Origin: Utricularia gibba
Lineage: Eukaryota; Plantae; Magnoliophyta
Direction of reading: 5' to 3'
Assembly: GCA_002189035.1 (NCBI GenBank)
Contig: NEEC01000139.1
Coordinates: forward strand, 1 to 21,373
Length of the DNA: 21,373 nucleotides
Below the pieces are notes generated by a model. The model was not told where the DNA came from. It searched no databases and was given only the letters and a program-made list of their open reading frames with translations. Shown one piece after another: positions 1 to 21,373 of the stretch; within the stretch, counting starts at the first letter, position 1; every line of letters starts with the position of its first letter. The translations under genes were made by a program, and so were the position numbers.

Positions 1-190
1 TGGGACCAGAGTGGGCTCATCAGCCAGACCGAACCCGGGCCAAGCCAAGGGCCCCTCGAGAGCGCCCCCACAAAACTAGATGGTGTTCCACGAAAAAAAA
101 TTAGGCGGCTCGTGATAACCAACGCTAAGAAATGCATCCCTTTTTTCGCCGGGCTAAAACTGACTTTGGGCTCATGCCCGGCGCGACCCC
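1..190. repeat. Partial GC-rich ~150/300-bp sub-repeat block (tail end)
   Basis: Matches 2323-2518 apart from several 1-nt deletions. Confidence 0.9.
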
Positions 191-337
191 AGCCGTGTGC
201 ATACGCAGCAGCACCACGAGGCCACATGGGCTTGGTTAATGCCCGCGTGCTCGAGCAGCAGCCACAAGGCCATACGGCCGGAAAAAAAGAAAAACAACCA
301 TAAAATACAATAAGCCAAAAATAAAAATAAAATTGAT

Positions 338-494
338 AAACCCTTGGTTCGGTTCGGGCCCAATCAAAACCCGTAGGGTTTAACCCGTTCGGGTTGAACA
401 GAAAGACAACCCCATGGGTCATGCAAACTGTAATACCCAGAATTTCATCGGGTTGGGTCCGAACCTGAATGGATCCAACCCAGGCCCATCTCTA
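338..494 (-). mobile_element. Probable solo terminus of a hAT-superfamily DNA transposon (copy 1)
   Basis: GGCCCATCTCTA at 483-494 reads TAGAGATGGGCC on the - strand, resembling Ac-type TIRs (Ac: TAGGGATGAAA). The adjacent ~150 bp has repeated AACCCG/CGGGTT/GGTTCGG/CCGAACC motifs in both orientations, typical of plant hAT subtermini. No partner TIR or TSD was found. Confidence 0.6.
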
Positions 495-497
495 ATC

Positions 498-1394
498 ATA
501 ATCATATGATATAGGTTTATTAAATTATAAATAATTGAAATACATTATTTATTAAACCGTAGGATAACTGTGAAAGCTTTTTGACTTAATTATTACCATT
601 TGATCCTCAGTTGTACTTTGGATGGAGTGTGTATTTTTACTTTAGTCAATTTAATTAGCATTCGATCCTTGGTTATGATTCAGATCATATTTGCTATTTT
701 TTTACTTTAAATATTTTTATTATCATTCGATCCTTAAGTATAATGCGGATCGAGCGCGTATTTTTTATTTTAATATTTTTTTTTAGCATTCGAACGTTAG
801 GTATGCTGCGGATCGAGCGTATATTTTCACTCTCATATTTTTATTAGCCTTAGATCCTTAGGTATACTTTGGATCGAGTGCATATTCATTTATTTTAAAT
901 CTTAATTAGCGTTCCACCGTTAGGAGCAATTTAGAACGTGTATACATTACAATGCCATGCCACACGGGCGTGGTTTACGCACAACCCACGCCCGTGTGCC
1001 CTTGCAATGTAAACACGCTCCACATTGCTCCTAAGGATCGAGCGTTAACACAAGTTTCAAGTAAACCATCTCCACTCGATCCGAATCATGTCTAAAGACC
1101 GAAAGCCAATAAAAATATTAAAATAAAAAATATACGCTCGATCCGCATCATATCTTAGAATCGAATGCAAATAGAATCGTTCAAATAAAAAATATACACT
1201 CGATTGGAATCTTAACCAAGGATCGAATGCTAATTAAAATGATTAAAATAAAAATGCACACTCCATCCAAAGTATAACTAAGGGTCGAATGCTAATAAAA
1301 TTAAAAACTAAGAAACTTTCACATGTAGTATATGCTTTAATAACTAACGTATTTACATTATTTATATTTTAATAAACATATATCACATGATTAT
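498..1394. mobile_element. Foldback / MULE-like non-autonomous element: ~900-bp imperfect inverted repeat with ~62-bp internal sub-repeats (copy 1)
   Basis: Left arm 498-973, right arm 986-1394. The outer 60 bp match 52/60 (498-557 vs reverse complement of 1335-1394). There is a perfect 13-bp inner stem CACACGGGCGTGG/CCACGCCCGTGTG. The element is AT-rich with no coding capacity. The inverted repeat is certain; the transposon class is inferred. Confidence 0.8.
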
Positions 1395-1411
1395 AAAAAT
1401 ATTTTTTTTGT

Positions 1412-1642
1412 CATTGTAGAAAGCTCATCACGCCACGCACACCACCCTGGAGAGGTTTCAACAGCTGTTATGAACTCACAACCCCTTGCTCAGCAGATTC
1501 AGTAAAATTCTCTAACACTTGGGCTTCCAACGGATCATATCCCATATTCATTCATACGAAATTGTGCAAGAATAATGTGACTTTGAGTTTGAACTAGATA
1601 GTAGGACGCTGATCGAAGAATGGCCCATCGAGTCTCTAAAAT
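1412..1642 (-). pseudogene. C-terminal fragment of a PIF/Harbinger (HARBI1-like, DDE_Tnp_4) transposase with 2 frameshifts and 1 stop (copy 1)
   Basis: Manual - strand translation: ILETRWAILRSASYYLVQTQSHIILA / frameshift / LHNFV*MNMGYDPLEAQVLENFTESAEQGV / frameshift / EFITAVETSPGWCAWRDELSTM. The motif order RWAIL..LHNF..DPLE..W..WRD.L matches plant PIF transposase C-termini as recalled; no database search was run. Confidence 0.85.
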
Positions 1643-1664
1643 TGGCCGTCCTCGCTCAACAAAT

Positions 1665-2518
1665 GTGGGGTGCACGTGACATCCCAATTTCAACAAATGC
1701 ATCATGATTTTCGTCGAGTGGGCCCATGAGCCCGTCCGAACCCGGGGCCCGGGCCAAGGGCCCCTCGAGAGCGCCCGCCTCAATACGAGGAGGTGTTCCT
1801 TCAAAAACCATATACGCGTCTCGTCACAACCCAACGTTAATAAATGCATCACTTTTTTTGGCGCGCTACTGCTGACTTTGGGCCTGAGTTCGGCACGACC
1901 TCCGGCCGATCAGGGTGCCCCCCGAGAGCTCCTCCTTAAGTATAAAGTGTGTTGTTGAAAAAAACCGTGTGCGGTTCTCGTGACATCCTAACTTCAACAA
2001 ATGCATCACGATTTTCGTCGAGTCGGACGGGACCGGGCTCCCGGGGCCCGGACGAGGCGCAGCGCCCGCTCCCCTCCCCCCCAAAACTAGAAGGTGTTCC
2101 ATGGAAAACCATTTAGGCGGCTCGTGACAACCCAAAGTTAATAAATGCATCACTTTCTTTGCCGGGCTACAATGACTTTACGCTCGAGCCTGGTACGACG
2201 TATGGGAAGATTCGAGTGCCCCCCGAGAGCGTCTCCACAAGTATAAAGCGTGTTGTTGAAAAAACCGTGTTGGGTGCACGTGACATCCTAATTTCAACAA
2301 ATGTGTCACGATTTTCGCCGAGTGGGACCAGAGTGGGCTCATCAGCCAGACCGAACCCGGGGCCCAAGCCAAGGGCCCCTCGAGAGCGCCCCCCCACAAA
2401 ACTAGATGGTGTTCCACGAAAAAAAATTAGGCGGCTCGTGATAACCCAACGCTAAGAAATGCATCCCTTTTTTCGCCGGGCTAAAACTGACTTTGGGCTC
2501 ATGCCCGGCGCGACCCCC
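1665..2518. repeat. GC-rich block of six ~150-bp sub-repeats arranged as ~300-bp dimers (copy 1)
   Basis: The CGT(G/C)A box starts at 1675, 1822, 1979, 2123, 2279 and 2437 (spacing 147/157/144/156/158). Alternate monomers are more alike than neighbouring ones. Confidence 0.93.
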
Positions 2519-2519
2519 A

Positions 2520-2604
2520 GCCCGTGTGCATACGCAGCAGCACCACGAGGCCACATGGGCTTGGTTAATGCCCGCGTGCTCGAGCAGCAGCCACAAGGCC
2601 ATAC
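2520..2604. repeat. Short degenerate direct duplication, ~50-bp period (present in every monomer)
   Basis: GCCCGTGTGCATACGCAGCAGCACCACGAGGCCACA at 2520 vs GCCCGCGTGCTCGAGCAGCAGCCACAAGGCCATA at 2570. Confidence 0.8.
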
Positions 2605-2669
2605 GGCCGTGGAAAAAAAGAAAAACAACCATAAAATACAATAAGCCAAAAATAAAAAATAAAATTGAT

Positions 2670-2826
2670 AAACCCTTGGTTCGGTTCGGGCCCAATCAAA
2701 ACCCGTAGGGTTTAACCCGTTCGGGTTGAACAGAAAGACAACCCCATGGGTCATGCAAACTGTAATACCCAGAATTTCATCGGGTTGGGTCCGAACCTGA
2801 ATGGATCCAACCCAGGCCCATCTCTA
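2670..2826 (-). mobile_element. Probable solo hAT terminus (copy 2)
   Basis: Same as 338-494; GGCCCATCTCTA ends at 2826. Confidence 0.6.
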
Positions 2827-2829
2827 ATC

Positions 2830-3726
2830 ATAATCATATGATATAGGTTTATTAAATTATAAATAATTGAAATACATTATTTATTAAACCGTAGGATAAC
2901 TGTGAAAGCTTCTTTGACTTAATTATTACCATTTGATCCTCAGTTGTACTTTGGATGGAGTGTGTATTTTTACTTTAGTCAATTTAATTAGCATTCGATC
3001 CTTGGTTATGATTCAGATCATATTTGCTATTTTTTTACTTTAAATATTTTTATTATCATTCGATCCTTAAGTATAATGCGGATCGAGCGCGTATTTTTAT
3101 TTTAATATTTTTATTAGCATTCGAACGTTAGGTATGCTGCGGATCGAGCGTATATTTTTCACTCTCATATTTTTATTAGCCTTAGATCCTTAGGTATACT
3201 TTGGATCGAGTGCATATTCATTTATTTTAAATCTTAATTAGCGTTCCACCGTTAGGAGCAATTTAGAACGTGTATACATTACAATGCCATGCCACACGGG
3301 CGTGGTTTACGCACAACCCACGCCCGTGTGCCCTTGCAATGTAAACACGCTCCACATTGCTCCTAAGGATCGAGCGTTAACACAAGTTTCAAGTAAACCA
3401 TCTCCACTCGATCCGAATCATGTCTAAAGACCGAAAGCCAATAAAAATATTAAAATAAAAAATATACGCTCGATCCGCATCATATCTTAGAATCGAATGC
3501 AAATAGAATCGTTCAAATAAAAAATATACACTCGATTGGAATCTTAACCAAGGATCGAATGCTAATTAAAATGATTAAAATAAAAATGCACACTCCATCC
3601 AAAGTATAACTAAGGGTCGAATGCTAATAAAATTAAAAACTAAGAAACTTTCACATGTAGTATATGCTTTAATAACTAACGTATTTACATTATTTATATT
3701 TTAATAAACATATATCACATGATTAT
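2830..3726. mobile_element. Foldback element (copy 2)
   Basis: Same as 498-1394 (ATAATCAT...ATGATTAT). Confidence 0.8.
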
Positions 3727-3743
3727 AAAAATATTTTTTTTGT

Positions 3744-3974
3744 CATTGTAGAAAGCTCATCACGCCACGCACACCACCCTGGAGAGGTTTCAACAGCTGT
3801 TATGAACTCACAACCCCTTGCTCAGCAGATTCAGTAAAATTCTCTAACACTTGGGCTTCCAACGGATCATATCCCATATTCATTCATACGAAATTGTGCA
3901 AGAATAATGTGACTTTGAGTTTGAACTAGATAGTAGGACGCTGATCGAAGAATGGCCCATCGAGTCTCTAAAAT
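3744..3974 (-). pseudogene. PIF/Harbinger transposase C-terminal fragment (copy 2)
   Basis: Same sequence as 1412-1642. Confidence 0.85.
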
Positions 3975-3996
3975 TGGCCGTCCTCGCTCAACAAAT

Positions 3997-4851
3997 GTGG
4001 GGTGCACGTGACATCCCAATTTCAACAAATGCATCATGATTTTCGTCGAGTGGGCCCATGAGCCCGTCCGAACCCGGGGCCCGGGCCAAGGGCCCCTCGA
4101 GAGCGCCCGCCTCAATACGAGGAGGTGTTCCTTCAAAAACCATATACGCGTCTCGTCACAACCCAACGTTAATAAATGCATCACTTTTTTTGGCGCGCTA
4201 CTGCTGACTTTGGGCCTGAGTTCGGCACGACCTCCGGCTCGATCAGGGTGCCCCACCGAGAGCTCCTCCTTAAGTATAAAGTGTGTTGTTGAAAAAAACC
4301 GTGTGCGGTTCTCGTGACATCCTAACTTCAACAAATGCATCACGATTTTCGTCGAGTCGGACGGGACCGGGCTCCCGGGGCCCGGACGAGGCGCAGCGCC
4401 CGCTCCCCTCCCCCCAAAACTAGAAGGTGTTCCATGGAAAACCATTTAGGCGGCTCGTGACAACCCAAAGTTAATAAATGCATCACTTTCTTTGCCGGGC
4501 TACAATGACTTTACGCTCGAGCCTGGTACGACGTATGGGAAGATTCGAGTGCCCCCCGAGAGCGTCTCCACAAGTATAAAGCGTGTTGTTGAAAAAACCG
4601 TGTTGGGTGCACGTGACATCCTAATTTCAACAAATGTGTCACGATTTTCGCCGAGTGGGACCAGAGTGGGCTCATCAGCCAGACCGAACCCGGGGCCCAA
4701 GCCAAGGGCCCCTCGAGAGCGCCCCCCCACAAAACTAGATGGTGTTCCACGAAAAAAAATTAGGCGGCTCGTGATAACCCAACGCTAAGAAATGCATCCC
4801 TTTTTTCGCCGGGCTAAAACTGACTTTGGGCTCATGCCCGGCGCGACCCCC
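3997..4851. repeat. GC-rich 150/300-bp sub-repeat block (copy 2)
   Basis: Same as 1665-2518. Confidence 0.93.
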
Positions 4852-5002
4852 AGCCCGTGTGCATACGCAGCAGCACCACGAGGCCACATGGGCTTGGTTA
4901 ATGCCCGCGTGCTCGAGCAGCAGCCACAAGGCCATACGGCCGTGGAAAAAAAGAAAAACAACCATAAAATACAATAAGCCAAAAATAAAAAATAAAATTG
5001 AT

Positions 5003-5159
5003 AAACCCTTGGTTCGGTTCGGGCCCAATCAAAACCCGTAGGGTTTAACCCGTTCGGGTTGAACAGAAAGACAACCCCATGGGTCATGCAAACTGTAATA
5101 CCCAGAATTTCATCGGGTTGGGTCCGAACCTGAATGGATCCAACCCAGGCCCATCTCTA
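5003..5159 (-). mobile_element. Probable solo hAT terminus (copy 3)
   Basis: Same as 338-494. Confidence 0.6.
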
Positions 5160-5162
5160 ATC

Positions 5163-6061
5163 ATAATCATATGATATAGGTTTATTAAATTATAAATAAT
5201 TGAAATACATTATTTATTAAACCGTAGGATAACTGTGAAAGCTTCTTTGACTTAATTATTACCATTTGATCCTCAGTTGTACTTTGGATGGAGTGTGTAT
5301 TTTTACTTTAGTCAATTTAATTAGCATTCGATCCTTGGTTATGATTCAGATCATATTTGCTATTTTTTTACTTTAAATATTTTTATTATCATTCGATCCT
5401 TAAGTATAATGCGGATCGAGCGCGTATTTTTTATTTTAATATTTTTTATTAGCATTCGAACGTTAGGTATGCTGCGGATCGAGCGTATATTTTTCACTCT
5501 CATATTTTTATTAGCCTTAGATCCTTAGGTATACTTTGGATCGAGTGCATATTCATTTATTTTAAATCTTAATTAGCGTTCCACCGTTAGGAGCAATTTA
5601 GAACGTGTATACATTACAATGCCATGCCACACGGGCGTGGTTTACGCACAACCCACGCCCGTGTGCCCTTGCAATGTAAACACGCTCCACATTGCTCCTA
5701 AGGATCGAGCGTTAACACAAGTTTCAAGTAAACCATCTCCACTCGATCCGAATCATGTCTAAAGACCGAAAGCCAATAAAAATATTAAAATAAAAAATAT
5801 ACGCTCGATCCGCATCATATCTTAGAATCGAATGCAAATAGAATCGTTCAAATAAAAAATATACACTCGATTGGAATCTTAACCAAGGATCGAATGCTAA
5901 TTAAAATGATTAAAATAAAAATGCACACTCCATCCAAAGTATAACTAAGGGTCGAATGCTAATAAAATTAAAAACTAAGAAACTTTCACATGTAGTATAT
6001 GCTTTAATAACTAACGTATTTACATTATTTATATTTTAATAAACATATATCACATGATTAT
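5163..6061. mobile_element. Foldback element (copy 3)
   Basis: Same as 498-1394. Confidence 0.8.
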
Positions 6062-6078
6062 AAAAATATTTTTTTTGT

Positions 6079-6309
6079 CATTGTAGAAAGCTCATCACGC
6101 CACGCACACCACCCTGGAGAGGTTTCAACAGCTGTTATGAACTCACAACCCCTTGCTCAGCAGATTCAGTAAAATTCTCTAACACTTGGGCTTCCAACGG
6201 ATCATATCCCATATTCATTCATACGAAATTGTGCAAGAATAATGTGACTTTGAGTTTGAACTAGATAGTAGGACGCTGATCGAAGAATGGCCCATCGAGT
6301 CTCTAAAAT
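6079..6309 (-). pseudogene. PIF/Harbinger transposase C-terminal fragment (copy 3)
   Basis: Same sequence as 1412-1642. Confidence 0.85.
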
Positions 6310-6331
6310 TGGCCGTCCTCGCTCAACAAAT

Positions 6332-7185
6332 GTGGGGTGCACGTGACATCCCAATTTCAACAAATGCATCATGATTTTCGTCGAGTGGGCCCATGAGCCC
6401 GTCCGAACCCGGGGCCCGGGCCAAGGGCCCCTCGAGAGCGCCCGCCTCAATACGAGGAGGTGTTCCTTCAAAAACCATATACGCGTCTCGTCACAACCCA
6501 ACGTTAATAAATGCATCACTTTTTTTGGCGCGCTACTGCTGACTTTGGGCCTGAGTTCGGCACGACCTCCGGCTCGATCAGGGTGCCCCCCGAGAGCTCC
6601 TCCTTAAGTATAAAGTGTGTTGTTGAAAAAAACCGTGTGCGGTTCTCGTGACATCCTAACTTCAACAAATGCATCACGATTTTCGTCGAGTCGGACGGGA
6701 CCGGGCTCCCGGGGCCCGGACGAGGCGCAGCGCCCGCTCCCCTCCCCCCCAAAACTAGAAGGTGTTCCATGGAAAACCATTTAGGCGGCTCGTGACAACC
6801 CAAAGTTAATAAATGCATCACTTTCTTTGCCGGGCTACAATGACTTTACGCTCGAGCCTGGTACGACGTATGGGAAGATTCGAGTGCCCCCGAGAGCGTC
6901 TCCACAAGTATAAAGCGTGTTGTTGAAAAAACCGTGTTGGGTGCACGTGACATCCTAATTTCAACAAATGTGTCACGATTTTCGCCGAGTGGGACCAGAG
7001 TGGGCTCATCAGCCAGACCGAACCCGGGGCCCAAGCCAAGGGCCCCTCGAGAGCGCCCCCCCACAAAACTAGATGGTGTTCCACGAAAAAAAATTAGGCG
7101 GCTCGTGATAACCCAACGCTAAGAAATGCATCCCTTTTTTCGCCGGGCTAAAACTGACTTTGGGCTCATGCCCGGCGCGACCCCC
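6332..7185. repeat. GC-rich 150/300-bp sub-repeat block (copy 3)
   Basis: Same as 1665-2518. Confidence 0.93.
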
Positions 7186-7336
7186 AGCCCGTGTGCATAC
7201 GCAGCAGCACCACGAGGCCACATGGGCTTGGTTAATGCCCGCGTGCTCGAGCAGCAGCCACAAGGCCATACGGCCGTGGAAAAAAAGAAAAACAACCATA
7301 AAATACAATAAGCCAAAAATAAAAAATAAAATTGAT

Positions 7337-7493
7337 AAACCCTTGGTTCGGTTCGGGCCCAATCAAAACCCGTAGGGTTTAACCCGTTCGGGTTGAACAG
7401 AAAGACAACCCCATGGGTCATGCAAACTGTAATACCCAGAATTTCATCGGGTTGGGTCCGAACCTGAATGGATCCAACCCAGGCCCATCTCTA
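7337..7493 (-). mobile_element. Probable solo hAT terminus (copy 4)
   Basis: Same as 338-494. Confidence 0.6.
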
Positions 7494-7496
7494 ATC

Positions 7497-8395
7497 ATAA
7501 TCATATGATATAGGTTTATTAAATTATAAATAATTGAAATACATTATTTATTAAACCGTAGGATAACTGTGAAAGCTTCTTTGACTTAATTATTACCATT
7601 TGATCCTCAGTTGTACTTTGGATGGAGTGTGTATTTTTACTTTAGTCAATTTAATTAGCATTCGATCCTTGGTTATGATTCAGATCATATTTGCTATTTT
7701 TTTACTTTAAATATTTTTATTATCATTCGATCCTTAAGTATAATGCGGATCGAGCGCGTATTTTTTATTTTAATATTTTTTATTAGCATTCGAACGTTAG
7801 GTATGCTGCGGATCGAGCGTATATTTTTCACTCTCATATTTTTATTAGCCTTAGATCCTTAGGTATACTTTGGATCGAGTGCATATTCATTTATTTTAAA
7901 TCTTAATTAGCGTTCCACCGTTAGGAGCAATTTAGAACGTGTATACATTACAATGCCATGCCACACGGGCGTGGTTTACGCACAACCCACGCCCGTGTGC
8001 CCTTGCAATGTAAACACGCTCCACATTGCTCCTAAGGATCGAGCGTTAACACAAGTTTCAAGTAAACCATCTCCACTCGATCCGAATCATGTCTAAAGAC
8101 CGAAAGCCAATAAAAATATTAAAATAAAAAATATACGCTCGATCCGCATCATATCTTAGAATCGAATGCAAATAGAATCGTTCAAATAAAAAATATACAC
8201 TCGATTGGAATCTTAACCAAGGATCGAATGCTAATTAAAATGATTAAAATAAAAATGCACACTCCATCCAAAGTATAACTAAGGGTCGAATGCTAATAAA
8301 ATTAAAAACTAAGAAACTTTCACATGTAGTATATGCTTTAATAACTAACGTATTTACATTATTTATATTTTAATAAACATATATCACATGATTAT
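7497..8395. mobile_element. Foldback element (copy 4)
   Basis: Same as 498-1394. Confidence 0.8.
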
Positions 8396-8412
8396 AAAAA
8401 TATTTTTTTTGT

Positions 8413-8643
8413 CATTGTAGAAAGCTCATCACGCCACGCACACCACCCTGGAGAGGTTTCAACAGCTGTTATGAACTCACAACCCCTTGCTCAGCAGATT
8501 CAGTAAAATTCTCTAACACTTGGGCTTCCAACGGATCATATCCCATATTCATTCATACGAAATTGTGCAAGAATAATGTGACTTTGAGTTTGAACTAGAT
8601 AGTAGGACGCTGATCGAAGAATGGCCCATCGAGTCTCTAAAAT
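8413..8643 (-). pseudogene. PIF/Harbinger transposase C-terminal fragment (copy 4)
   Basis: Same sequence as 1412-1642. Confidence 0.85.
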
Positions 8644-8665
8644 TGGCCGTCCTCGCTCAACAAAT

Positions 8666-9521
8666 GTGGGGTGCACGTGACATCCCAATTTCAACAAATG
8701 CATCATGATTTTCGTCGAGTGGGCCCATGAGCCCGTCCGAACCCGGGGCCCGGGCCAAGGGCCCCTCGAGAGCGCCCGCCTCAATACGAGGAGGTGTTCC
8801 TTCAAAAACCATATACGCGTCTCGTCACAACCCAACGTTAATAAATGCATCACTTTTTTTGGCGCGCTACTGCTGACTTTGGGCCTGAGTTCGGCACGAC
8901 CTCCGGCTCGATCAGGGTGCCCCACCGAGAGCTCCTCCTTAAGTATAAAGTGTGTTGTTGAAAAAAACCGTGTGCGGTTCTCGTGACATCCTAACTTCAA
9001 CAAATGCATCACGATTTTCGTCGAGTCGGACGGGACCGGGCTCCCGGGGCCCGGACGAGGCGCAGCGCCCGCTCCCCTCCCCCCCAAAACTAGAAGGTGT
9101 TCCATGGAAAACCATTTAGGCGGCTCGTGACAACCCAAAGTTAATAAATGCATCACTTTCTTTGCCGGGCTACAATGACTTTACGCTCGAGCCTGGTACG
9201 ACGTATGGGAAGATTCGAGTGCCCCCCGAGAGCGTCTCCACAAGTATAAAGCGTGTTGTTGAAAAAACCGTGTTGGGTGCACGTGACATCCTAATTTCAA
9301 CAAATGTGTCACGATTTTCGCCGAGTGGGACCAGAGTGGGCTCATCAGCCAGACCGAACCCGGGGCCCAAGCCAAGGGCCCCTCGAGAGCGCCCCCCCAC
9401 AAAACTAGATGGTGTTCCACGAAAAAAAATTAGGCGGCTCGTGATAACCCAACGCTAAGAAATGCATCCCTTTTTTCGCCGGGCTAAAACTGACTTTGGG
9501 CTCATGCCCGGCGCGACCCCC
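8666..9521. repeat. GC-rich 150/300-bp sub-repeat block (copy 4)
   Basis: Same as 1665-2518. Confidence 0.93.
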
Positions 9522-9672
9522 AGCCCGTGTGCATACGCAGCAGCACCACGAGGCCACATGGGCTTGGTTAATGCCCGCGTGCTCGAGCAGCAGCCACAAG
9601 GCCATACGGCCGTGGAAAAAAAGAAAAACAACCATAAAATACAATAAGCCAAAAATAAAAAATAAAATTGAT

Positions 9673-9829
9673 AAACCCTTGGTTCGGTTCGGGCCCAATC
9701 AAAACCCGTAGGGTTTAACCCGTTCGGGTTGAACAGAAAGACAACCCCATGGGTCATGCAAACTGTAATACCCAGAATTTCATCGGGTTGGGTCCGAACC
9801 TGAATGGATCCAACCCAGGCCCATCTCTA
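9673..9829 (-). mobile_element. Probable solo hAT terminus (copy 5)
   Basis: Same as 338-494. Confidence 0.6.
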
Positions 9830-9832
9830 ATC

Positions 9833-10731
9833 ATAATCATATGATATAGGTTTATTAAATTATAAATAATTGAAATACATTATTTATTAAACCGTAGGAT
9901 AACTGTGAAAGCTTCTTTGACTTAATTATTACCATTTGATCCTCAGTTGTACTTTGGATGGAGTGTGTATTTTTACTTTAGTCAATTTAATTAGCATTCG
10001 ATCCTTGGTTATGATTCAGATCATATTTGCTATTTTTTTACTTTAAATATTTTTATTATCATTCGATCCTTAAGTATAATGCGGATCGAGCGCGTATTTT
10101 TTATTTTAATATTTTTTATTAGCATTCGAACGTTAGGTATGCTGCGGATCGAGCGTATATTTTTCACTCTCATATTTTTATTAGCCTTAGATCCTTAGGT
10201 ATACTTTGGATCGAGTGCATATTCATTTATTTTAAATCTTAATTAGCGTTCCACCGTTAGGAGCAATTTAGAACGTGTATACATTACAATGCCATGCCAC
10301 ACGGGCGTGGTTTACGCACAACCCACGCCCGTGTGCCCTTGCAATGTAAACACGCTCCACATTGCTCCTAAGGATCGAGCGTTAACACAAGTTTCAAGTA
10401 AACCATCTCCACTCGATCCGAATCATGTCTAAAGACCGAAAGCCAATAAAAATATTAAAATAAAAAATATACGCTCGATCCGCATCATATCTTAGAATCG
10501 AATGCAAATAGAATCGTTCAAATAAAAAATATACACTCGATTGGAATCTTAACCAAGGATCGAATGCTAATTAAAATGATTAAAATAAAAATGCACACTC
10601 CATCCAAAGTATAACTAAGGGTCGAATGCTAATAAAATTAAAAACTAAGAAACTTTCACATGTAGTATATGCTTTAATAACTAACGTATTTACATTATTT
10701 ATATTTTAATAAACATATATCACATGATTAT
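9833..10731. mobile_element. Foldback element (copy 5)
   Basis: Same as 498-1394. Confidence 0.8.
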
Positions 10732-10748
10732 AAAAATATTTTTTTTGT

Positions 10749-10979
10749 CATTGTAGAAAGCTCATCACGCCACGCACACCACCCTGGAGAGGTTTCAACA
10801 GCTGTTATGAACTCACAACCCCTTGCTCAGCAGATTCAGTAAAATTCTCTAACACTTGGGCTTCCAACGGATCATATCCCATATTCATTCATACGAAATT
10901 GTGCAAGAATAATGTGACTTTGAGTTTGAACTAGATAGTAGGACGCTGATCGAAGAATGGCCCATCGAGTCTCTAAAAT
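10749..10979 (-). pseudogene. PIF/Harbinger transposase C-terminal fragment (copy 5)
   Basis: Same sequence as 1412-1642. Confidence 0.85.
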
Positions 10980-11001
10980 TGGCCGTCCTCGCTCAACAAA
11001 T

Positions 11002-11856
11002 GTGGGGTGCACGTGACATCCCAATTTCAACAAATGCATCATGATTTTCGTCGAGTGGGCCCATGAGCCCGTCCGAACCCGGGGCCCGGGCCAAGGGCCC
11101 CTCGAGAGCGCCCGCCTCAATACGAGGAGGTGTTCCTTCAAAAACCATATACGCGTCTCGTCACAACCCAACGTTAATAAATGCATCACTTTTTTTGGCG
11201 CGCTACTGCTGACTTTGGGCCTGAGTTCGGCACGACCTCCGGCTCGATCAGGGTGCCCCACCGAGAGCTCCTCCTTAAGTATAAAGTGTGTTGTTGAAAA
11301 AAACCGTGTGCGGTTCTCGTGACATCCTAACTTCAACAAATGCATCACGATTTTCGTCGAGTCGGACGGGACCGGGCTCCCGGGGCCCGGACGAGGCGCA
11401 GCGCCCGCTCCCCTCCCCCCAAAACTAGAAGGTGTTCCATGGAAAACCATTTAGGCGGCTCGTGACAACCCAAAGTTAATAAATGCATCACTTTCTTTGC
11501 CGGGCTACAATGACTTTACGCTCGAGCCTGGTACGACGTATGGGAAGATTCGAGTGCCCCCCGAGAGCGTCTCCACAAGTATAAAGCGTGTTGTTGAAAA
11601 AACCGTGTTGGGTGCACGTGACATCCTAATTTCAACAAATGTGTCACGATTTTCGCCGAGTGGGACCAGAGTGGGCTCATCAGCCAGACCGAACCCGGGG
11701 CCCAAGCCAAGGGCCCCTCGAGAGCGCCCCCCCACAAAACTAGATGGTGTTCCACGAAAAAAAATTAGGCGGCTCGTGATAACCCAACGCTAAGAAATGC
11801 ATCCCTTTTTTCGCCGGGCTAAAACTGACTTTGGGCTCATGCCCGGCGCGACCCCC
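11002..11856. repeat. GC-rich 150/300-bp sub-repeat block (copy 5)
   Basis: Same as 1665-2518. Confidence 0.93.
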
Positions 11857-12007
11857 AGCCCGTGTGCATACGCAGCAGCACCACGAGGCCACATGGGCTT
11901 GGTTAATGCCCGCGTGCTCGAGCAGCAGCCACAAGGCCATACGGCCGTGGAAAAAAAGAAAAACAACCATAAAATACAATAAGCCAAAAATAAAAAATAA
12001 AATTGAT

Positions 12008-12164
12008 AAACCCTTGGTTCGGTTCGGGCCCAATCAAAACCCGTAGGGTTTAACCCGTTCGGGTTGAACAGAAAGACAACCCCATGGGTCATGCAAACTG
12101 TAATACCCAGAATTTCATCGGGTTGGGTCCGAACCTGAATGGATCCAACCCAGGCCCATCTCTA
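12008..12164 (-). mobile_element. Probable solo hAT terminus (copy 6)
   Basis: Same as 338-494. Confidence 0.6.
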
Positions 12165-12167
12165 ATC

Positions 12168-13066
12168 ATAATCATATGATATAGGTTTATTAAATTATAA
12201 ATAATTGAAATACATTATTTATTAAACCGTAGGATAACTGTGAAAGCTTCTTTGACTTAATTATTACCATTTGATCCTCAGTTGTACTTTGGATGGAGTG
12301 TGTATTTTTACTTTAGTCAATTTAATTAGCATTCGATCCTTGGTTATGATTCAGATCATATTTGCTATTTTTTTACTTTAAATATTTTTATTATCATTCG
12401 ATCCTTAAGTATAATGCGGATCGAGCGCGTATTTTTTATTTTAATATTTTTTATTAGCATTCGAACGTTAGGTATGCTGCGGATCGAGCGTATATTTTTC
12501 ACTCTCATATTTTTATTAGCCTTAGATCCTTAGGTATACTTTGGATCGAGTGCATATTCATTTATTTTAAATCTTAATTAGCGTTCCACCGTTAGGAGCA
12601 ATTTAGAACGTGTATACATTACAATGCCATGCCACACGGGCGTGGTTTACGCACAACCCACGCCCGTGTGCCCTTGCAATGTAAACACGCTCCACATTGC
12701 TCCTAAGGATCGAGCGTTAACACAAGTTTCAAGTAAACCATCTCCACTCGATCCGAATCATGTCTAAAGACCGAAAGCCAATAAAAATATTAAAATAAAA
12801 AATATACGCTCGATCCGCATCATATCTTAGAATCGAATGCAAATAGAATCGTTCAAATAAAAAATATACACTCGATTGGAATCTTAACCAAGGATCGAAT
12901 GCTAATTAAAATGATTAAAATAAAAATGCACACTCCATCCAAAGTATAACTAAGGGTCGAATGCTAATAAAATTAAAAACTAAGAAACTTTCACATGTAG
13001 TATATGCTTTAATAACTAACGTATTTACATTATTTATATTTTAATAAACATATATCACATGATTAT
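12168..13066. mobile_element. Foldback element (copy 6)
   Basis: Same as 498-1394. Confidence 0.8.
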
Positions 13067-13083
13067 AAAAATATTTTTTTTGT

Positions 13084-13314
13084 CATTGTAGAAAGCTCAT
13101 CACGCCACGCACACCACCCTGGAGAGGTTTCAACAGCTGTTATGAACTCACAACCCCTTGCTCAGCAGATTCAGTAAAATTCTCTAACACTTGGGCTTCC
13201 AACGGATCATATCCCATATTCATTCATACGAAATTGTGCAAGAATAATGTGACTTTGAGTTTGAACTAGATAGTAGGACGCTGATCGAAGAATGGCCCAT
13301 CGAGTCTCTAAAAT
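13084..13314 (-). pseudogene. PIF/Harbinger transposase C-terminal fragment (copy 6)
   Basis: Same sequence as 1412-1642. Confidence 0.85.
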
Positions 13315-13336
13315 TGGCCGTCCTCGCTCAACAAAT

Positions 13337-14192
13337 GTGGGGTGCACGTGACATCCCAATTTCAACAAATGCATCATGATTTTCGTCGAGTGGGCCCATG
13401 AGCCCGTCCGAACCCGGGGCCCGGGCCAAGGGCCCCTCGAGAGCGCCCGCCTCAATACGAGGAGGTGTTCCTTCAAAAACCATATACGCGTCTCGTCACA
13501 ACCCAACGTTAATAAATGCATCACTTTTTTTGGCGCGCTACTGCTGACTTTGGGCCTGAGTTCGGCACGACCTCCGGCTCGATCAGGGTGCCCCACCGAG
13601 AGCTCCTCCTTAAGTATAAAGTGTGTTGTTGAAAAAAACCGTGTGCGGTTCTCGTGACATCCTAACTTCAACAAATGCATCACGATTTTCGTCGAGTCGG
13701 ACGGGACCGGGCTCCCGGGGCCCGGACGAGGCGCAGCGCCCGCTCCCCTCCCCCCCAAAACTAGAAGGTGTTCCATGGAAAACCATTTAGGCGGCTCGTG
13801 ACAACCCAAAGTTAATAAATGCATCACTTTCTTTGCCGGGCTACAATGACTTTACGCTCGAGCCTGGTACGACGTATGGGAAGATTCGAGTGCCCCCCGA
13901 GAGCGTCTCCACAAGTATAAAGCGTGTTGTTGAAAAAACCGTGTTGGGTGCACGTGACATCCTAATTTCAACAAATGTGTCACGATTTTCGCCGAGTGGG
14001 ACCAGAGTGGGCTCATCAGCCAGACCGAACCCGGGGCCCAAGCCAAGGGCCCCTCGAGAGCGCCCCCCCACAAAACTAGATGGTGTTCCACGAAAAAAAA
14101 TTAGGCGGCTCGTGATAACCCAACGCTAAGAAATGCATCCCTTTTTTCGCCGGGCTAAAACTGACTTTGGGCTCATGCCCGGCGCGACCCCC
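13337..14192. repeat. GC-rich 150/300-bp sub-repeat block (copy 6)
   Basis: Same as 1665-2518. Confidence 0.93.
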
Positions 14193-14343
14193 AGCCCGTG
14201 TGCATACGCAGCAGCACCACGAGGCCACATGGGCTTGGTTAATGCCCGCGTGCTCGAGCAGCAGCCACAAGGCCATACGGCCGTGGAAAAAAAGAAAAAC
14301 AACCATAAAATACAATAAGCCAAAAATAAAAAATAAAATTGAT

Positions 14344-14500
14344 AAACCCTTGGTTCGGTTCGGGCCCAATCAAAACCCGTAGGGTTTAACCCGTTCGGGT
14401 TGAACAGAAAGACAACCCCATGGGTCATGCAAACTGTAATACCCAGAATTTCATCGGGTTGGGTCCGAACCTGAATGGATCCAACCCAGGCCCATCTCTA
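14344..14500 (-). mobile_element. Probable solo hAT terminus (copy 7)
   Basis: Same as 338-494. Confidence 0.6.
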
Positions 14501-14503
14501 ATC

Positions 14504-15402
14504 ATAATCATATGATATAGGTTTATTAAATTATAAATAATTGAAATACATTATTTATTAAACCGTAGGATAACTGTGAAAGCTTCTTTGACTTAATTAT
14601 TACCATTTGATCCTCAGTTGTACTTTGGATGGAGTGTGTATTTTTACTTTAGTCAATTTAATTAGCATTCGATCCTTGGTTATGATTCAGATCATATTTG
14701 CTATTTTTTTACTTTAAATATTTTTATTATCATTCGATCCTTAAGTATAATGCGGATCGAGCGCGTATTTTTTATTTTAATATTTTTTATTAGCATTCGA
14801 ACGTTAGGTATGCTGCGGATCGAGCGTATATTTTTCACTCTCATATTTTTATTAGCCTTAGATCCTTAGGTATACTTTGGATCGAGTGCATATTCATTTA
14901 TTTTAAATCTTAATTAGCGTTCCACCGTTAGGAGCAATTTAGAACGTGTATACATTACAATGCCATGCCACACGGGCGTGGTTTACGCACAACCCACGCC
15001 CGTGTGCCCTTGCAATGTAAACACGCTCCACATTGCTCCTAAGGATCGAGCGTTAACACAAGTTTCAAGTAAACCATCTCCACTCGATCCGAATCATGTC
15101 TAAAGACCGAAAGCCAATAAAAATATTAAAATAAAAAATATACGCTCGATCCGCATCATATCTTAGAATCGAATGCAAATAGAATCGTTCAAATAAAAAA
15201 TATACACTCGATTGGAATCTTAACCAAGGATCGAATGCTAATTAAAATGATTAAAATAAAAATGCACACTCCATCCAAAGTATAACTAAGGGTCGAATGC
15301 TAATAAAATTAAAAACTAAGAAACTTTCACATGTAGTATATGCTTTAATAACTAACGTATTTACATTATTTATATTTTAATAAACATATATCACATGATT
15401 AT
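14504..15402. mobile_element. Foldback element (copy 7)
   Basis: Same as 498-1394. Confidence 0.8.
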
Positions 15403-15419
15403 AAAAATATTTTTTTTGT

Positions 15420-15650
15420 CATTGTAGAAAGCTCATCACGCCACGCACACCACCCTGGAGAGGTTTCAACAGCTGTTATGAACTCACAACCCCTTGCTCA
15501 GCAGATTCAGTAAAATTCTCTAACACTTGGGCTTCCAACGGATCATATCCCATATTCATTCATACGAAATTGTGCAAGAATAATGTGACTTTGAGTTTGA
15601 ACTAGATAGTAGGACGCTGATCGAAGAATGGCCCATCGAGTCTCTAAAAT
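15420..15650 (-). pseudogene. PIF/Harbinger transposase C-terminal fragment (copy 7)
   Basis: Same sequence as 1412-1642. Confidence 0.85.
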
Positions 15651-15672
15651 TGGCCGTCCTCGCTCAACAAAT

Positions 15673-16526
15673 GTGGGGTGCACGTGACATCCCAATTTCA
15701 ACAAATGCATCATGATTTTCGTCGAGTGGGCCCATGAGCCCGTCCGAACCCGGGGCCCGGGCCAAGGGCCCCTCGAGAGCGCCCGCCTCAATACGAGGAG
15801 GTGTTCCTTCAAAAACCATATACGCGTCTCGTCACAACCCAACGTTAATAAATGCATCACTTTTTTTGGCGCGCTACTGCTGACTTTGGGCCTGAGTTCG
15901 GCACGACCTCCGGCCGATCAGGGTGCCCCACCGAGAGCTCCTCCTTAAGTATAAAGTGTGTTGTTGAAAAAAACCGTGTGCGGTTCTCGTGACATCCTAA
16001 CTTCAACAAATGCATCACGATTTTCGTCGAGTCGGACGGGACCGGGCTCCCGGGGCCCGGACGAGGCGCAGCGCCCGCTCCCTCCCCCCCAAAACTAGAA
16101 GGTGTTCCATGGAAAACCATTTAGGCGGCTCGTGACAACCCAAAGTTAATAAATGCATCACTTTCTTTGCCGGGCTACAATGACTTTACGCTCGAGCCTG
16201 GTACGACGTATGGGAAGATTCGAGTGCCCCCCGAGAGCGTCTCCACAAGTATAAAGCGTGTTGTTGAAAAAACCGTGTTGGGTGCACGTGACATCCTAAT
16301 TTCAACAAATGTGTCACGATTTTCGCCGAGTGGGACCAGAGTGGGCTCATCAGCCAGACCGAACCCGGGGCCCAAGCCAAGGGCCCCTCGAGAGCGCCCC
16401 CCCACAAAACTAGATGGTGTTCCACGAAAAAAAATTAGGCGGCTCGTGATAACCCAACGCTAAGAAATGCATCCCTTTTTTCGCCGGGCTAAAACTGACT
16501 TTGGGCTCATGCCCGGCGCGACCCCC
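15673..16526. repeat. GC-rich 150/300-bp sub-repeat block (copy 7)
   Basis: Same as 1665-2518. Confidence 0.93.
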
Positions 16527-16677
16527 AGCCCGTGTGCATACGCAGCAGCACCACGAGGCCACATGGGCTTGGTTAATGCCCGCGTGCTCGAGCAGCAGCC
16601 ACAAGGCCATACGGCCGTGGAAAAAAAGAAAAACAACCATAAAATACAATAAGCCAAAAATAAAAAATAAAATTGAT

Positions 16678-16834
16678 AAACCCTTGGTTCGGTTCGGGCC
16701 CAATCAAAACCCGTAGGGTTTAACCCGTTCGGGTTGAACAGAAAGACAACCCCATGGGTCATGCAAACTGTAATACCCAGAATTTCATCGGGTTGGGTCC
16801 GAACCTGAATGGATCCAACCCAGGCCCATCTCTA
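16678..16834 (-). mobile_element. Probable solo hAT terminus (copy 8)
   Basis: Same as 338-494. Confidence 0.6.
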
Positions 16835-16837
16835 ATC

Positions 16838-17735
16838 ATAATCATATGATATAGGTTTATTAAATTATAAATAATTGAAATACATTATTTATTAAACCGT
16901 AGGATAACTGTGAAAGCTTCTTTGACTTAATTATTACCATTTGATCCTCAGTTGTACTTTGGATGGAGTGTGTATTTTTACTTTAGTCAATTTAATTAGC
17001 ATTCGATCCTTGGTTATGATTCAGATCATATTTGCTATTTTTTTACTTTAAATATTTTTATTATCATTCGATCCTTAAGTATAATGCGGATCGAGCGCGT
17101 ATTTTTTATTTTAATATTTTTATTAGCATTCGAACGTTAGGTATGCTGCGGATCGAGCGTATATTTTTCACTCTCATATTTTTATTAGCCTTAGATCCTT
17201 AGGTATACTTTGGATCGAGTGCATATTCATTTATTTTAAATCTTAATTAGCGTTCCACCGTTAGGAGCAATTTAGAACGTGTATACATTACAATGCCATG
17301 CCACACGGGCGTGGTTTACGCACAACCCACGCCCGTGTGCCCTTGCAATGTAAACACGCTCCACATTGCTCCTAAGGATCGAGCGTTAACACAAGTTTCA
17401 AGTAAACCATCTCCACTCGATCCGAATCATGTCTAAAGACCGAAAGCCAATAAAAATATTAAAATAAAAAATATACGCTCGATCCGCATCATATCTTAGA
17501 ATCGAATGCAAATAGAATCGTTCAAATAAAAAATATACACTCGATTGGAATCTTAACCAAGGATCGAATGCTAATTAAAATGATTAAAATAAAAATGCAC
17601 ACTCCATCCAAAGTATAACTAAGGGTCGAATGCTAATAAAATTAAAAACTAAGAAACTTTCACATGTAGTATATGCTTTAATAACTAACGTATTTACATT
17701 ATTTATATTTTAATAAACATATATCACATGATTAT
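16838..17735. mobile_element. Foldback element (copy 8)
   Basis: Same as 498-1394. Confidence 0.8.
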
Positions 17736-17752
17736 AAAAATATTTTTTTTGT

Positions 17753-17983
17753 CATTGTAGAAAGCTCATCACGCCACGCACACCACCCTGGAGAGGTTTC
17801 AACAGCTGTTATGAACTCACAACCCCTTGCTCAGCAGATTCAGTAAAATTCTCTAACACTTGGGCTTCCAACGGATCATATCCCATATTCATTCATACGA
17901 AATTGTGCAAGAATAATGTGACTTTGAGTTTGAACTAGATAGTAGGACGCTGATCGAAGAATGGCCCATCGAGTCTCTAAAAT
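17753..17983 (-). pseudogene. PIF/Harbinger transposase C-terminal fragment (copy 8)
   Basis: Same sequence as 1412-1642. Confidence 0.85.
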
Positions 17984-18005
17984 TGGCCGTCCTCGCTCAA
18001 CAAAT

Positions 18006-18856
18006 GTGGGGTGCACGTGACATCCCAATTTCAACAAATGCATCATGATTTTCGTCGAGTGGGCCCATGAGCCCGTCCGAACCCGGGGCCCGGGCCAAGG
18101 GCCCCTCGAGAGCGCCCGCCTCAATACGAGGAGGTGTTCCTTCAAAAACCATATACGCGTCTCGTCACAACCCAACGTTAATAAATGCATCACTTTTTTT
18201 GGCGCGCTACTGCTGACTTTGGGCCTGAGTTCGGCACGACCTCCGGCTCGATCAGGGTGCCCCCGAGAGCTCCTCCTTAAGTATAAAGTGTGTTGTTGAA
18301 AAAAACCGTGTGCGGTTCTCGTGACATCCTAACTTCAACAAATGCATCACGATTTTCGTCGAGTCGGACGGGACCGGGCTCCCGGGGCCCGGACGAGGCG
18401 CAGCGCCCGCTCCCCTCCCCCCAAAACTAGAAGGTGTTCCATGGAAAACCATTTAGGCGGCTCGTGACAACCCAAAGTTAATAAATGCATCACTTTCTTT
18501 GCCGGGCTACAATGACTTTACGCTCGAGCCTGGTACGACGTATGGGAAGATTCGAGTGCCCCCCGAGAGCGTCTCCACAAGTATAAAGCGTGTTGTTGAA
18601 AAAACCGTGTTGGGTGCACGTGACATCCTAATTTCAACAAATGTGTCACGATTTTCGCCGAGTGGGACCAGAGTGGGCTCATCAGCCAGACCGAACCCGG
18701 GCCCAAGCCAAGGGCCCCTCGAGAGCGCCCCCCACAAAACTAGATGGTGTTCCACGAAAAAAAATTAGGCGGCTCGTGATAACCCAACGCTAAGAAATGC
18801 ATCCCTTTTTTCGCCGGGCTAAAACTGACTTTGGGCTCATGCCCGGCGCGACCCCC
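18006..18856. repeat. GC-rich 150/300-bp sub-repeat block (copy 8)
   Basis: Same as 1665-2518. Confidence 0.93.
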
Positions 18857-19007
18857 AGCCCGTGTGCATACGCAGCAGCACCACGAGGCCACATGGGCTT
18901 GGTTAATGCCCGCGTGCTCGAGCAGCAGCCACAAGGCCATACGGCCGTGGAAAAAAAGAAAAACAACCATAAAATACAATAAGCCAAAAATAAAAAATAA
19001 AATTGAT

Positions 19008-19164
19008 AAACCCTTGGTTCGGTTCGGGCCCAATCAAAACCCGTAGGGTTTAACCCGTTCGGGTTGAACAGAAAGACAACCCCATGGGTCATGCAAACTG
19101 TAATACCCAGAATTTCATCGGGTTGGGTCCGAACCTGAATGGATCCAACCCAGGCCCATCTCTA
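19008..19164 (-). mobile_element. Probable solo hAT terminus (copy 9)
   Basis: Same as 338-494. Confidence 0.6.
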
Positions 19165-19167
19165 ATC

Positions 19168-20064
19168 ATAATCATATGATATAGGTTTATTAAATTATAA
19201 ATAATTGAAATACATTATTTATTAAACCGTAGGATAACTGTGAAAGCTTCTTTGACTTAATTATTACCATTTGATCCTCAGTTGTACTTTGGATGGAGTG
19301 TGTATTTTTACTTTAGTCAATTTAATTAGCATTCGATCCTTGGTTATGATTCAGATCATATTTGCTATTTTTTTACTTTAAATATTTTTATTATCATTCG
19401 ATCCTTAAGTATAATGCGGATCGAGCGCGTATTTTTTTATTTTAATATTTTTTATTAGCATTCGAACGTTAGGTATGCTGCGGATCGAGCGTATATTTTT
19501 CACTCTCATATTTTTATTAGCCTTAGATCCTTAGGTATACTTTGGATCGAGTGCATATTCATTTATTTTAAATCTTAATTAGCGTTCCACCGTTAGGAGC
19601 AATTTAGAACGTGTATACATTACAATGCCATGCCACACGGGCGTGGTTTACGCACAACCCACGCCCGTGTGCCCTTGCAATGTAAACACGCTCCACATTG
19701 CTCCTAAGGATCGAGCGTTAACACAAGTTTCAAGTAAACCATCTCCACTCGATCCGATCATGTCTAAAGACCGAAAGCCAATAAAATATTAAAATAAAAA
19801 ATATACGCTCGATCCGCATCATATCTTAGAATCGAATGCAAATAGAATCGTTCAAATAAAAATATACACTCGATTGGAATCTTAACCAAGGATCGAATGC
19901 TAATTAAAATGATTAAAATAAAAATGCACACTCCATCCAAAGTATAACTAAGGGTCGAATGCTAATAAAATTAAAAACTAAGAAACTTTCACATGTAGTA
20001 TATGCTTTAATAACTAACGTATTTACATTATTTATATTTTAATAAACGTATATCACATGATTAT
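19168..20064. mobile_element. Foldback element (copy 9)
   Basis: Same as 498-1394, with a few 1-nt deletions and an A>G at 20048. Confidence 0.8.
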
Positions 20065-20080
20065 AAAAATATTTTTTTGT

Positions 20081-20311
20081 CATTGTAGAAAGGTCATCAC
20101 GCCACGTACACCACCCTGGAGAGGTTTCAACAGCTGTTATGAACTCACAACCCCTTGCTCAGCAGATTCAGTAAAATTCTCTAACACTTGGGCTTCCAAC
20201 GGATCATATCCCATATTCATTCATACGAAATTGTGCAAGAATAATGTGACTTTGAGTTTGAACTAGATAGTAGGACGCTGATCGAAGAATGGCCCATCGA
20301 GTCTCTAAAAT
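20081..20311 (-). pseudogene. PIF/Harbinger transposase C-terminal fragment (copy 9, variant)
   Basis: As 1412-1642 but with C>G at 20093 and C>T at 20107, giving WCTWRDDLS instead of WCAWRDELS. Confidence 0.85.
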
Positions 20312-20333
20312 TGGCCGTCCTCGCTCAACAAAT

Positions 20334-21184
20334 GTGGGGTGCACGTGACATCCCAATTTCAACAAATGCATCATGATTTTCGTCGAGTGGGCCCATGAGC
20401 CCGTCCGAACCCGGGGCCCGGGCCAAGGGCCCCTCGAGAGCGCCCGCCTCAATACGAGGAGGTGTTCCTTCAAAAACCATATACGCGTCTCGTCACAACC
20501 CAACGTTAATAAATGCATCACTTTTTTTGGCGCGCTACTGCTGACTTTGGGCCCGAGTTCGGCACGACCTCCGGCCGATCAGGGTGCCCCCCGAGAGCTC
20601 CTCCTTAAGTATAAAGTGTGTTGTTGAAAAAAAACCGTGTGCGGTTCTCGTGACATCCTAACTTCAACAAATGCATCACGATTTTCGTCGAGTCGGACGG
20701 GACCGGGCTCCCGGGGCCCGGACGAGGCGCAGCGCCCGCTCCCTCCCCCCAAAACTAGAAGTGTTTCCATGGAAAACCATTTAGGCGGCTCGTGACAACC
20801 CAAAGTTAATAAATGCATCACTTTCTTTGACGGGCTACAATGACTTTACGCTCGAGCCTGGTACGACGTATGGGAAGATTCGAGTCCCCCCCGAGAGCGT
20901 CTCCACAAGTATAAAGCGTGTTGTTGAAAAAACCGTGTTGGGTGCACGTGACATCCTAATTTCAACAAATGTGTCACGATTTTCGCCGAGTGGGACCAGA
21001 GTGGGCTCATCAGCCAGACCGAACCCGGGCCCAAGCCAAGGGCCCCTCGAGAGCGCCCCCCACAAAACTAGATGGTGTTCCACGAAAAAAAATTAGGCGG
21101 CTCGTGATAACCCAACGCTTAGAAATGCATCCCTTTTTTCGCCGGGCTAAAACTGACTTTGGGCTCATGCCCGGCGCGACCCCC
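20334..21184. repeat. GC-rich 150/300-bp sub-repeat block (copy 9, slightly diverged)
   Basis: As 1665-2518, with changes at about 20554, 20761-20766, 20830, 20886 and 21120. Confidence 0.93.
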
Positions 21185-21335
21185 AGCCCGTGTGCATACG
21201 CAGCAGCACCACGAGGCCACATGGGCTTGGTTAATGCCCGCGTGCTCGAGCAGCAGCCACAAGGCCATACGGCCGTGGAAAAAAAGAAAAACAACCATAA
21301 AATACAATAAGCCAAAAATAAAAAATAAAATTGAT

Positions 21336-21373
21336 AAACCTTGGTTCGGTTCGGGCCCAATCAAACCCGTAGG
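21336..21373 (-). mobile_element. Partial hAT-like subterminal region, truncated by the window edge
   Basis: Matches the start of 338-494, with 1-nt deletions. Confidence 0.5.

Follow-up and report, generated by a model that had tools for sequence, protein, structure and literature searches.

Satellites composed of pieces of transposable elements (TEs) are already a described class, and a 2025 review (Satovic-Vuksic, Majcen & Plohl, PMC12628747) places the source of such composite satellites in scrambled heterochromatic 'TE graveyards', where nested insertions are followed by decay and then by tandemisation of the scrambled segment. Chromosome-specific centromeric satellites with monomers of 979 bp to 5.4 kb have been reported in potato (Gong et al. 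2012, as cited in PMC4107277), and in work on Helitrons perfect head-to-tail CTAG-TC junctions have been interpreted as rolling-circle tandems (PMC2267711). Here we analysed a 21,373-nt stretch of DNA from Utricularia gibba (assembly GCA_002189035.1, contig NEEC01000139.1, positions 1 to 21,373 of the forward strand), referred to below as the window. The window is a tandem array of a ~2.33-kb unit built from TE debris and an older GC-rich repeat, and the divergence within its parts, set against the near-identity of its copies, shows that the parts had decayed before the unit was amplified en bloc. The array adds a case to the graveyard class and leaves the current understanding of it unchanged.

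The periodicity of the array was measured from k-mer self-distances over the whole window, and 2,332-2,336 bp was the commonest spacing of identical 20-mers. A unique 25-mer anchor was found nine times at a spacing of 2,330-2,336 bp, and the window from 1 to 21373 amounted to 9.15 head-to-tail copies of one unit, the arrangement expected of a satellite. An earlier reading of the DNA, made from the letters alone (the original prediction), had called tandem monomers of ~2.33 kb with a single BamHI site (471) and a single HindIII site (574) in each. Both calls held, the copies being at least 99.87% identical and site mapping placing one BamHI site (471 + n x 2.33 kb) and one HindIII site (574 + n x 2.33 kb) in every unit. 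Substitution identity among the eight complete units was 99.87-100%. Nearly all of the 14 variable alignment columns across these units were homopolymer-length indels, differences of a kind typical of long-read error. The truncated units at the two ends (1-470 and 19141-21373) differed by ~1-2.5%, counting substitutions and indels, as compared to at most 0.13% in the eight inner units, and this noise looks like the mark of low read depth where a contig runs out. No unique flanking DNA was present at either end of the window. From the noise of the end units we took the window to be an entire small contig of a long-read assembly, with inner units that are effectively identical.

Each unit carried the same modules in the same order: a GC-rich ~150/300-bp repeat block, a ~300-bp terminal piece, an 897-bp foldback and a PIF/Harbinger remnant. 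The longest open reading frame (ORF) in the window was no longer than 206 aa and no Pfam family was matched in the open frames of the unit of at least 35 aa, so no module is an intact autonomous element. The fixed order and the lack of a complete element were both as predicted. No module was depleted in CpG, the ratio of observed to expected being 0.8-0.9 outside the GC-rich block (1.0) and the AT-rich foldback (1.67).

The PIF/Harbinger fragment proposed in the original prediction was confirmed by homology to DDE_Tnp_4 proteins. A phmmer search against 1.84 billion representatives returned four matches, two of which were DDE_Tnp_4/Plant_tran proteins, one from Sesamum latifolium. Sesamum, the source of the best named relative of the remnant, belongs to Lamiales, as does Utricularia, in agreement with the stated origin of the window. 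The first piece of the remnant aligned to the very end of DDE_Tnp_4 (54% over 39 aa with P0001 and 72% over 32 aa with P0003), and the piece in the second frame carried on in register to the C-terminal end of P0003 (81% over 21 aa). P0003, the closest relative, is a 146-aa partial PIF/Harbinger protein from a Logan assembly of a public read set, where it lies on a 1,169-bp contig. The frames of the remnant read ...VERGRPILETRWAILRSASYYLVQTQSHIILA, LFLHNFV*MNMGYDPLEAQVLENFTESAE and ...AWRDELSTM..., and the frameshifts and stops were common to every unit. A direct Pfam scan of the three short pieces gave no match, and the unit held neither intact transposase and Myb-like ORFs nor a PIF-type pair of terminal inverted repeats (TIRs) with a TTA/TAA duplication. 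Homology began at ~1660, where the GC-rich repeat sets in. Judged from these alignments the remnant is the genuine tail of a dead PIF/Harbinger transposase, and its match to plant DDE_Tnp_4/Plant_tran proteins was counted in favour of an origin from plant nuclear TEs.

The other modules were assessed by comparison of their internal repeats. Homology to the ~300-bp repeat spanned 1664 to ~2522, and likeness within this GC-rich block was 77-80% between whole ~300-bp units and 79-87% between A/A and B/B halves. The foldback had been predicted at ~900 bp and was recovered at 897 bp (498-1394). Its arms were 80-88% complementary by repeat scan and 83.7% alike over 406 aligned positions, with one extra 62-bp subrepeat in the left arm as compared to the right. 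Folding of the foldback as DNA gave -210 kcal/mol as compared to -75 for shuffled sequences (z = -29.7). Long inverted arms with internal subrepeats, as expected of foldback elements and miniature inverted-repeat transposable elements (MITEs), were therefore present. The outer ends carried no target-site duplication (TSD), none being shared by the flanks ...CTCTAATC and AAAAATAT..., and the foldback is not assignable to a superfamily. The heptamer GGATCGA occurred nine times per unit, always within the foldback (662-1226 and equivalents), for a total of 81 in the window as compared to 2.1 expected. Within the subrepeats it pairs as TCGATCC..14 nt..GGATCGA, which may be a former transposase-binding motif. 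A reading of the foldback as joined transposon ends, with the termini at the centre, was rejected, since no TIR class resembles the central bases and these lie in an ordinary hairpin. A weak MIR6143 match at the equivalent of this central hairpin (3264-3354, minus strand), which scored 28 bits where the gathering threshold is 75 (E 0.014), was likewise discarded as a generic hairpin and not a miRNA gene. A foldback with arm subrepeats tied to a satellite, as found here, has been described as Tetris in Drosophila virilis (Dias et al. 2014, as cited in PMC12628747). In the account given there the arm subrepeats of Tetris expand into the satellite, whereas the foldback of this unit is a passenger module and its 62-bp subrepeats are unexpanded.

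The terminal piece passed from GC-rich through A-rich sequence into ~170 bp crowded with CGGGTT/AACCCG motifs of either orientation, and dense subterminal motifs of this sort are typical of TIR elements. It closes on the minus strand with TAGAGATGGGCCTGGG, which occurred once per unit (479-494 and equivalents). At the tip (494, minus strand) TAGAGATGGG... agrees with the YARNG start of hAT TIRs, which is evidence at the level of a motif. No second TIR for this end was found in the unit, where the 16-mer stayed single even when up to three mismatches were allowed, and no remnant of a hAT transposase or dimerisation domain was matched by Pfam in any open frame of the unit. The stretch from 2523 to 2700 had no significant homology to the ~300-bp repeat. 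The hAT label rests on a 5-base TIR motif and on subterminal CGGGTT-type motifs at a single end, from which no 8-bp TSD can be read. With equal right this end may be taken for the 3' terminus of a Helitron, in which a hairpin, 10 nt and CTAA lead directly into TC. A single octamer resembling a telomere unit or telo-box, TAGGGTTT, lay inside the hAT-like end of each unit (374-381 and equivalents) and is probably there by chance. The original prediction had counted probably three DNA-transposon families in the unit. One of these, PIF/Harbinger, is now proven, while hAT stands as a motif only and the foldback comes with neither a TSD nor a superfamily.

The order of events was assessed from the contrast in age between the parts and the whole. 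Internal repeats and foldback arms were 77-87% alike (13-23% diverged), as compared to at least 99.87% identity between units. Diverged internal parts, frameshifts and stops shared by all copies and near-identical units together show that the mosaic decayed first and was then multiplied as a block. With parts 13-23% diverged and units diverged by ~0%, the amplification is dated late. The suggestion in the original prediction that a locus was amplified as a unit is supported by this age contrast, in the form of block multiplication after decay.

With moderate confidence we read the array as a genuine nuclear long-monomer satellite (macrosatellite) whose unit is a frozen, decayed TE-rich locus and which grew by unequal exchange. 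The starting locus would have contained an older ~300-bp GC-rich tandem repeat together with an orphan hAT-like end, a foldback and a PIF/Harbinger tail. Unequal exchange between ~300-bp repeats lying on either side of the debris would have produced the first duplication and the later growth, with '2.8 repeats + debris' as the resulting higher-order unit. The uniformity of the array could have been kept by continued exchange or conversion, or the array may simply be very young. Unequal exchange appears to be the simplest route because the GC-rich block adjoins the debris on both sides within the array.

Table 1. Coordinates of the array, its units and the modules of the reference unit, in positions of the window.
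Feature	Position	Strand	Description
Tandem array	1..21373	.	9.15 copies of a 2,330-2,336-bp unit
Reference unit, BamHI to BamHI	471..2802	+	Supported by anchor spacing and 99.87-100% unit identity
Starts of units 2-8	2803, 5136, 7470, 9806, 12141, 14477, 16811		Partial unit from 19141
Foldback, 897 bp	498..1394	.	Arms of 482 bp (left) and 415 bp (right)
Left-arm subrepeats, 62/63 bp	590..898	+	~5 copies, each with TCGATCC..GGATCGA
Central GC-rich hairpin of foldback	947..1012	.	30-nt arms, 83% complementary, 6-nt loop
Right-arm subrepeats, 62 bp	1073..1301	-	~3.7 copies, inverted relative to left arm
Dead C-terminal PIF/Harbinger (DDE_Tnp_4) transposase remnant	1394..1684	-	~90 codons (~280 bp), three frames with stops
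GC-rich block	1664..2522	+	2.8 units of ~300-bp repeat, each of two related ~150-bp halves (A/B)
Terminal piece, TIR-type (hAT-like)	2523..2826 (equivalent to ~191-494)	-	Tip 2826 = 494
Helitron-like reading of the tip	450..497	+	Stem 450-461/470-481, 10 nt, CTAA 492-495, TC 496-497

Several points are to be set against this account of a nuclear macrosatellite. The debris does not sit in the GC-rich repeat as a clean in-phase insertion: the repeat breaks off at phase ~253 and is taken up again at phase 9 of ~304, and ~60 bp of the ~300-bp unit is missing or replaced at the debris, a result that by itself tells neither for nor against unequal exchange. The window consists of array up to both its ends, and the nuclear location, the copy number and the route of exchange are inferences from this one stretch. 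The near-perfect identity of the units may come in part from consensus polishing. Undepleted CpG (observed/expected 0.8-1.7) is unusual for old methylated heterochromatin; it is compatible with weak methylation, youth or an unmethylated compartment, and the U. gibba genome has been described as lightly methylated (PMC8333044). Finally, searches of protein and DNA collections, which are poor in plant DNA, turned up no independent sequence of the unit.

These collections were searched in several ways. Seven ORFs of the unit were absent from a collection of 15 billion proteins by exact look-up, and a word-based protein search gave no match for either the frame across the PIF/GC junction or the frame in the hAT-like end. 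Two patterns sought exactly in metagenome contigs and one sought in genome contigs, collections with little plant DNA, were likewise without a match. As plant DNA is scarce in them, blanks in these protein and DNA collections say little. Rfam searches of the window at gathering and permissive thresholds detected no real RNA family, the CrcZ and Guanidine-III matches being due to chance, and no tRNA was detected using ARAGORN.

We compared the unit to the described satellites. Like the graveyard satellites (PMC12628747), it is composed of successive stretches from different TEs, none of them intact. Unlike those satellites, for which the evidence is chiefly short and barely recognisable likeness to TEs in bivalves (PMC12628747), the unit here is 2.33 kb long with sharply bounded modules, protein homology proves the identity of one module, and the unit also takes in an older tandem repeat. 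We regard it as an unusually legible case of a new satellite made by recycling dead TE pieces together with an older repeat, legible because the modules keep sharp borders and one of them still aligns to a transposase. The analogy to potato centromere repeats drawn in the original prediction was apt for kilobase-sized homogeneous monomers and otherwise loose, as the potato satellites resemble retrotransposons (PMC4107277). In the accounts available through PMC4107277 and PMC12628747, the potato satellites and Sobo share with this array kilobase monomers, very high homogeneity, lineage specificity and TE-related sequence. As described there, they resemble long terminal repeat (LTR) retrotransposons and are centromeric or mapped by fluorescence in situ hybridization (FISH), whereas the recognisable pieces of the array here are DNA-transposon debris and the array is known from its sequence alone.

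The second reading of the terminal piece leads to a different explanation of the whole array, one that we consider unlikely. Under this explanation the unit is one non-autonomous Helitron with captured or invading fragments, and the array would have formed as a concatemer by rolling-circle read-through, or as a multimer that then integrated, with the 3' CTAA joined directly to the 5' TC at the boundaries. Helitrons are known for mosaics of captured fragments, which agrees with the composition of the unit. CTAA-TC lies at the sole sharp module boundary (492-497), 10 nt after a hairpin with a 12-bp stem and a folding energy of -20.9 kcal/mol, and a fold as stable was seen in just 1.4% of the 42-nt windows of the unit. 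This layout agrees with the published rules, which call for TC at the 5' end, CTRR at the 3' end and, 10-15 bp before the latter, a palindrome (PMC2267711). In head-to-tail Helitron tandems (Pritham & Feschotte, as cited in PMC2267711) CTRR likewise runs straight into TC at the boundary, behind a hairpin. Those known from that account are dimers or short arrays and not arrays of at least nine copies, and membership of the array here is unproven, as the window offers no host A/T flanks, no dispersed copies and no family 5' consensus. The match is also post hoc, since with four CTRR-TC sites per unit there is a ~5% chance that one would fall behind such a hairpin. The 200 bp inside the end are dense in CGGGTT/AACCCG in both orientations, as in TIR elements, and the foldback would begin 2 bp from the 5' end. 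The 5' bases TCATAATCAT are unlike the maize 5' consensus (PMC2267711). No Rep/helicase remains were detected by Pfam in the open frames of the unit, and the window held no dispersed copy showing A/T flanks. If the array were of Helitron origin, a transposition mechanism would have given rise to a plant macrosatellite in a single step, and this in a genome with reportedly satellite-free centromeres.

We consider it improbable that the window derives from a non-chromosomal 2.33-kb circle, either extrachromosomal circular DNA (eccDNA) or a mitochondrial-plasmid-like replicon, present as long rolling-circle concatemers and assembled as read-length 'arrays'. Effectively identical copies, the lack of flanks in the window and undepleted CpG are all consistent with such a circle, and the AT-rich 0.9-kb palindrome could serve as its origin. 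The unit, however, is made of nuclear TE debris and carries no replication gene, and a search of the bacterial plasmid collection in distant mode gave no match. The latter result also excluded a concatemer of a bacterial plasmid from a trap microbe.

An assembly or consensus artefact, in which one or two genomic copies were expanded or in which the array is real but more varied than seen, is very improbable. The differences between units are nearly all homopolymer errors and the end units are markedly noisier, suggesting low coverage, as would be expected of an artefact. Hairpin-adapter read artefacts yield inverted copies, however, and direct head-to-tail repeats over 21 kb are unlike their products. 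A satellite derived from the intergenic spacer of ribosomal DNA (rDNA) has the slightest chance of being correct. GC-rich subrepeats beside AT-rich DNA are reminiscent of plant spacers, but Rfam detected no rRNA, the window had no plant RNA polymerase I start motif (TATRTANGGGG-like), and a transposase remnant sits within the unit.

The putative centromeres of U. gibba have been published as lacking satellites (PMC8333044). On our preferred reading of the array as a nuclear macrosatellite, unplaced pieces that consist of repeat only, this one among them, are candidate parts of the heterochromatin or the centromere cores left unassembled in the very small U. gibba genome. The unit encodes nothing, and any effect of the array would be structural, through heterochromatin or through a hairpin-prone 0.9-kb palindrome every 2.3 kb. 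U. gibba is a plant with an altered small interfering RNA (siRNA) pathway, and a palindrome repeated at this interval could affect replication stability or small-RNA production.

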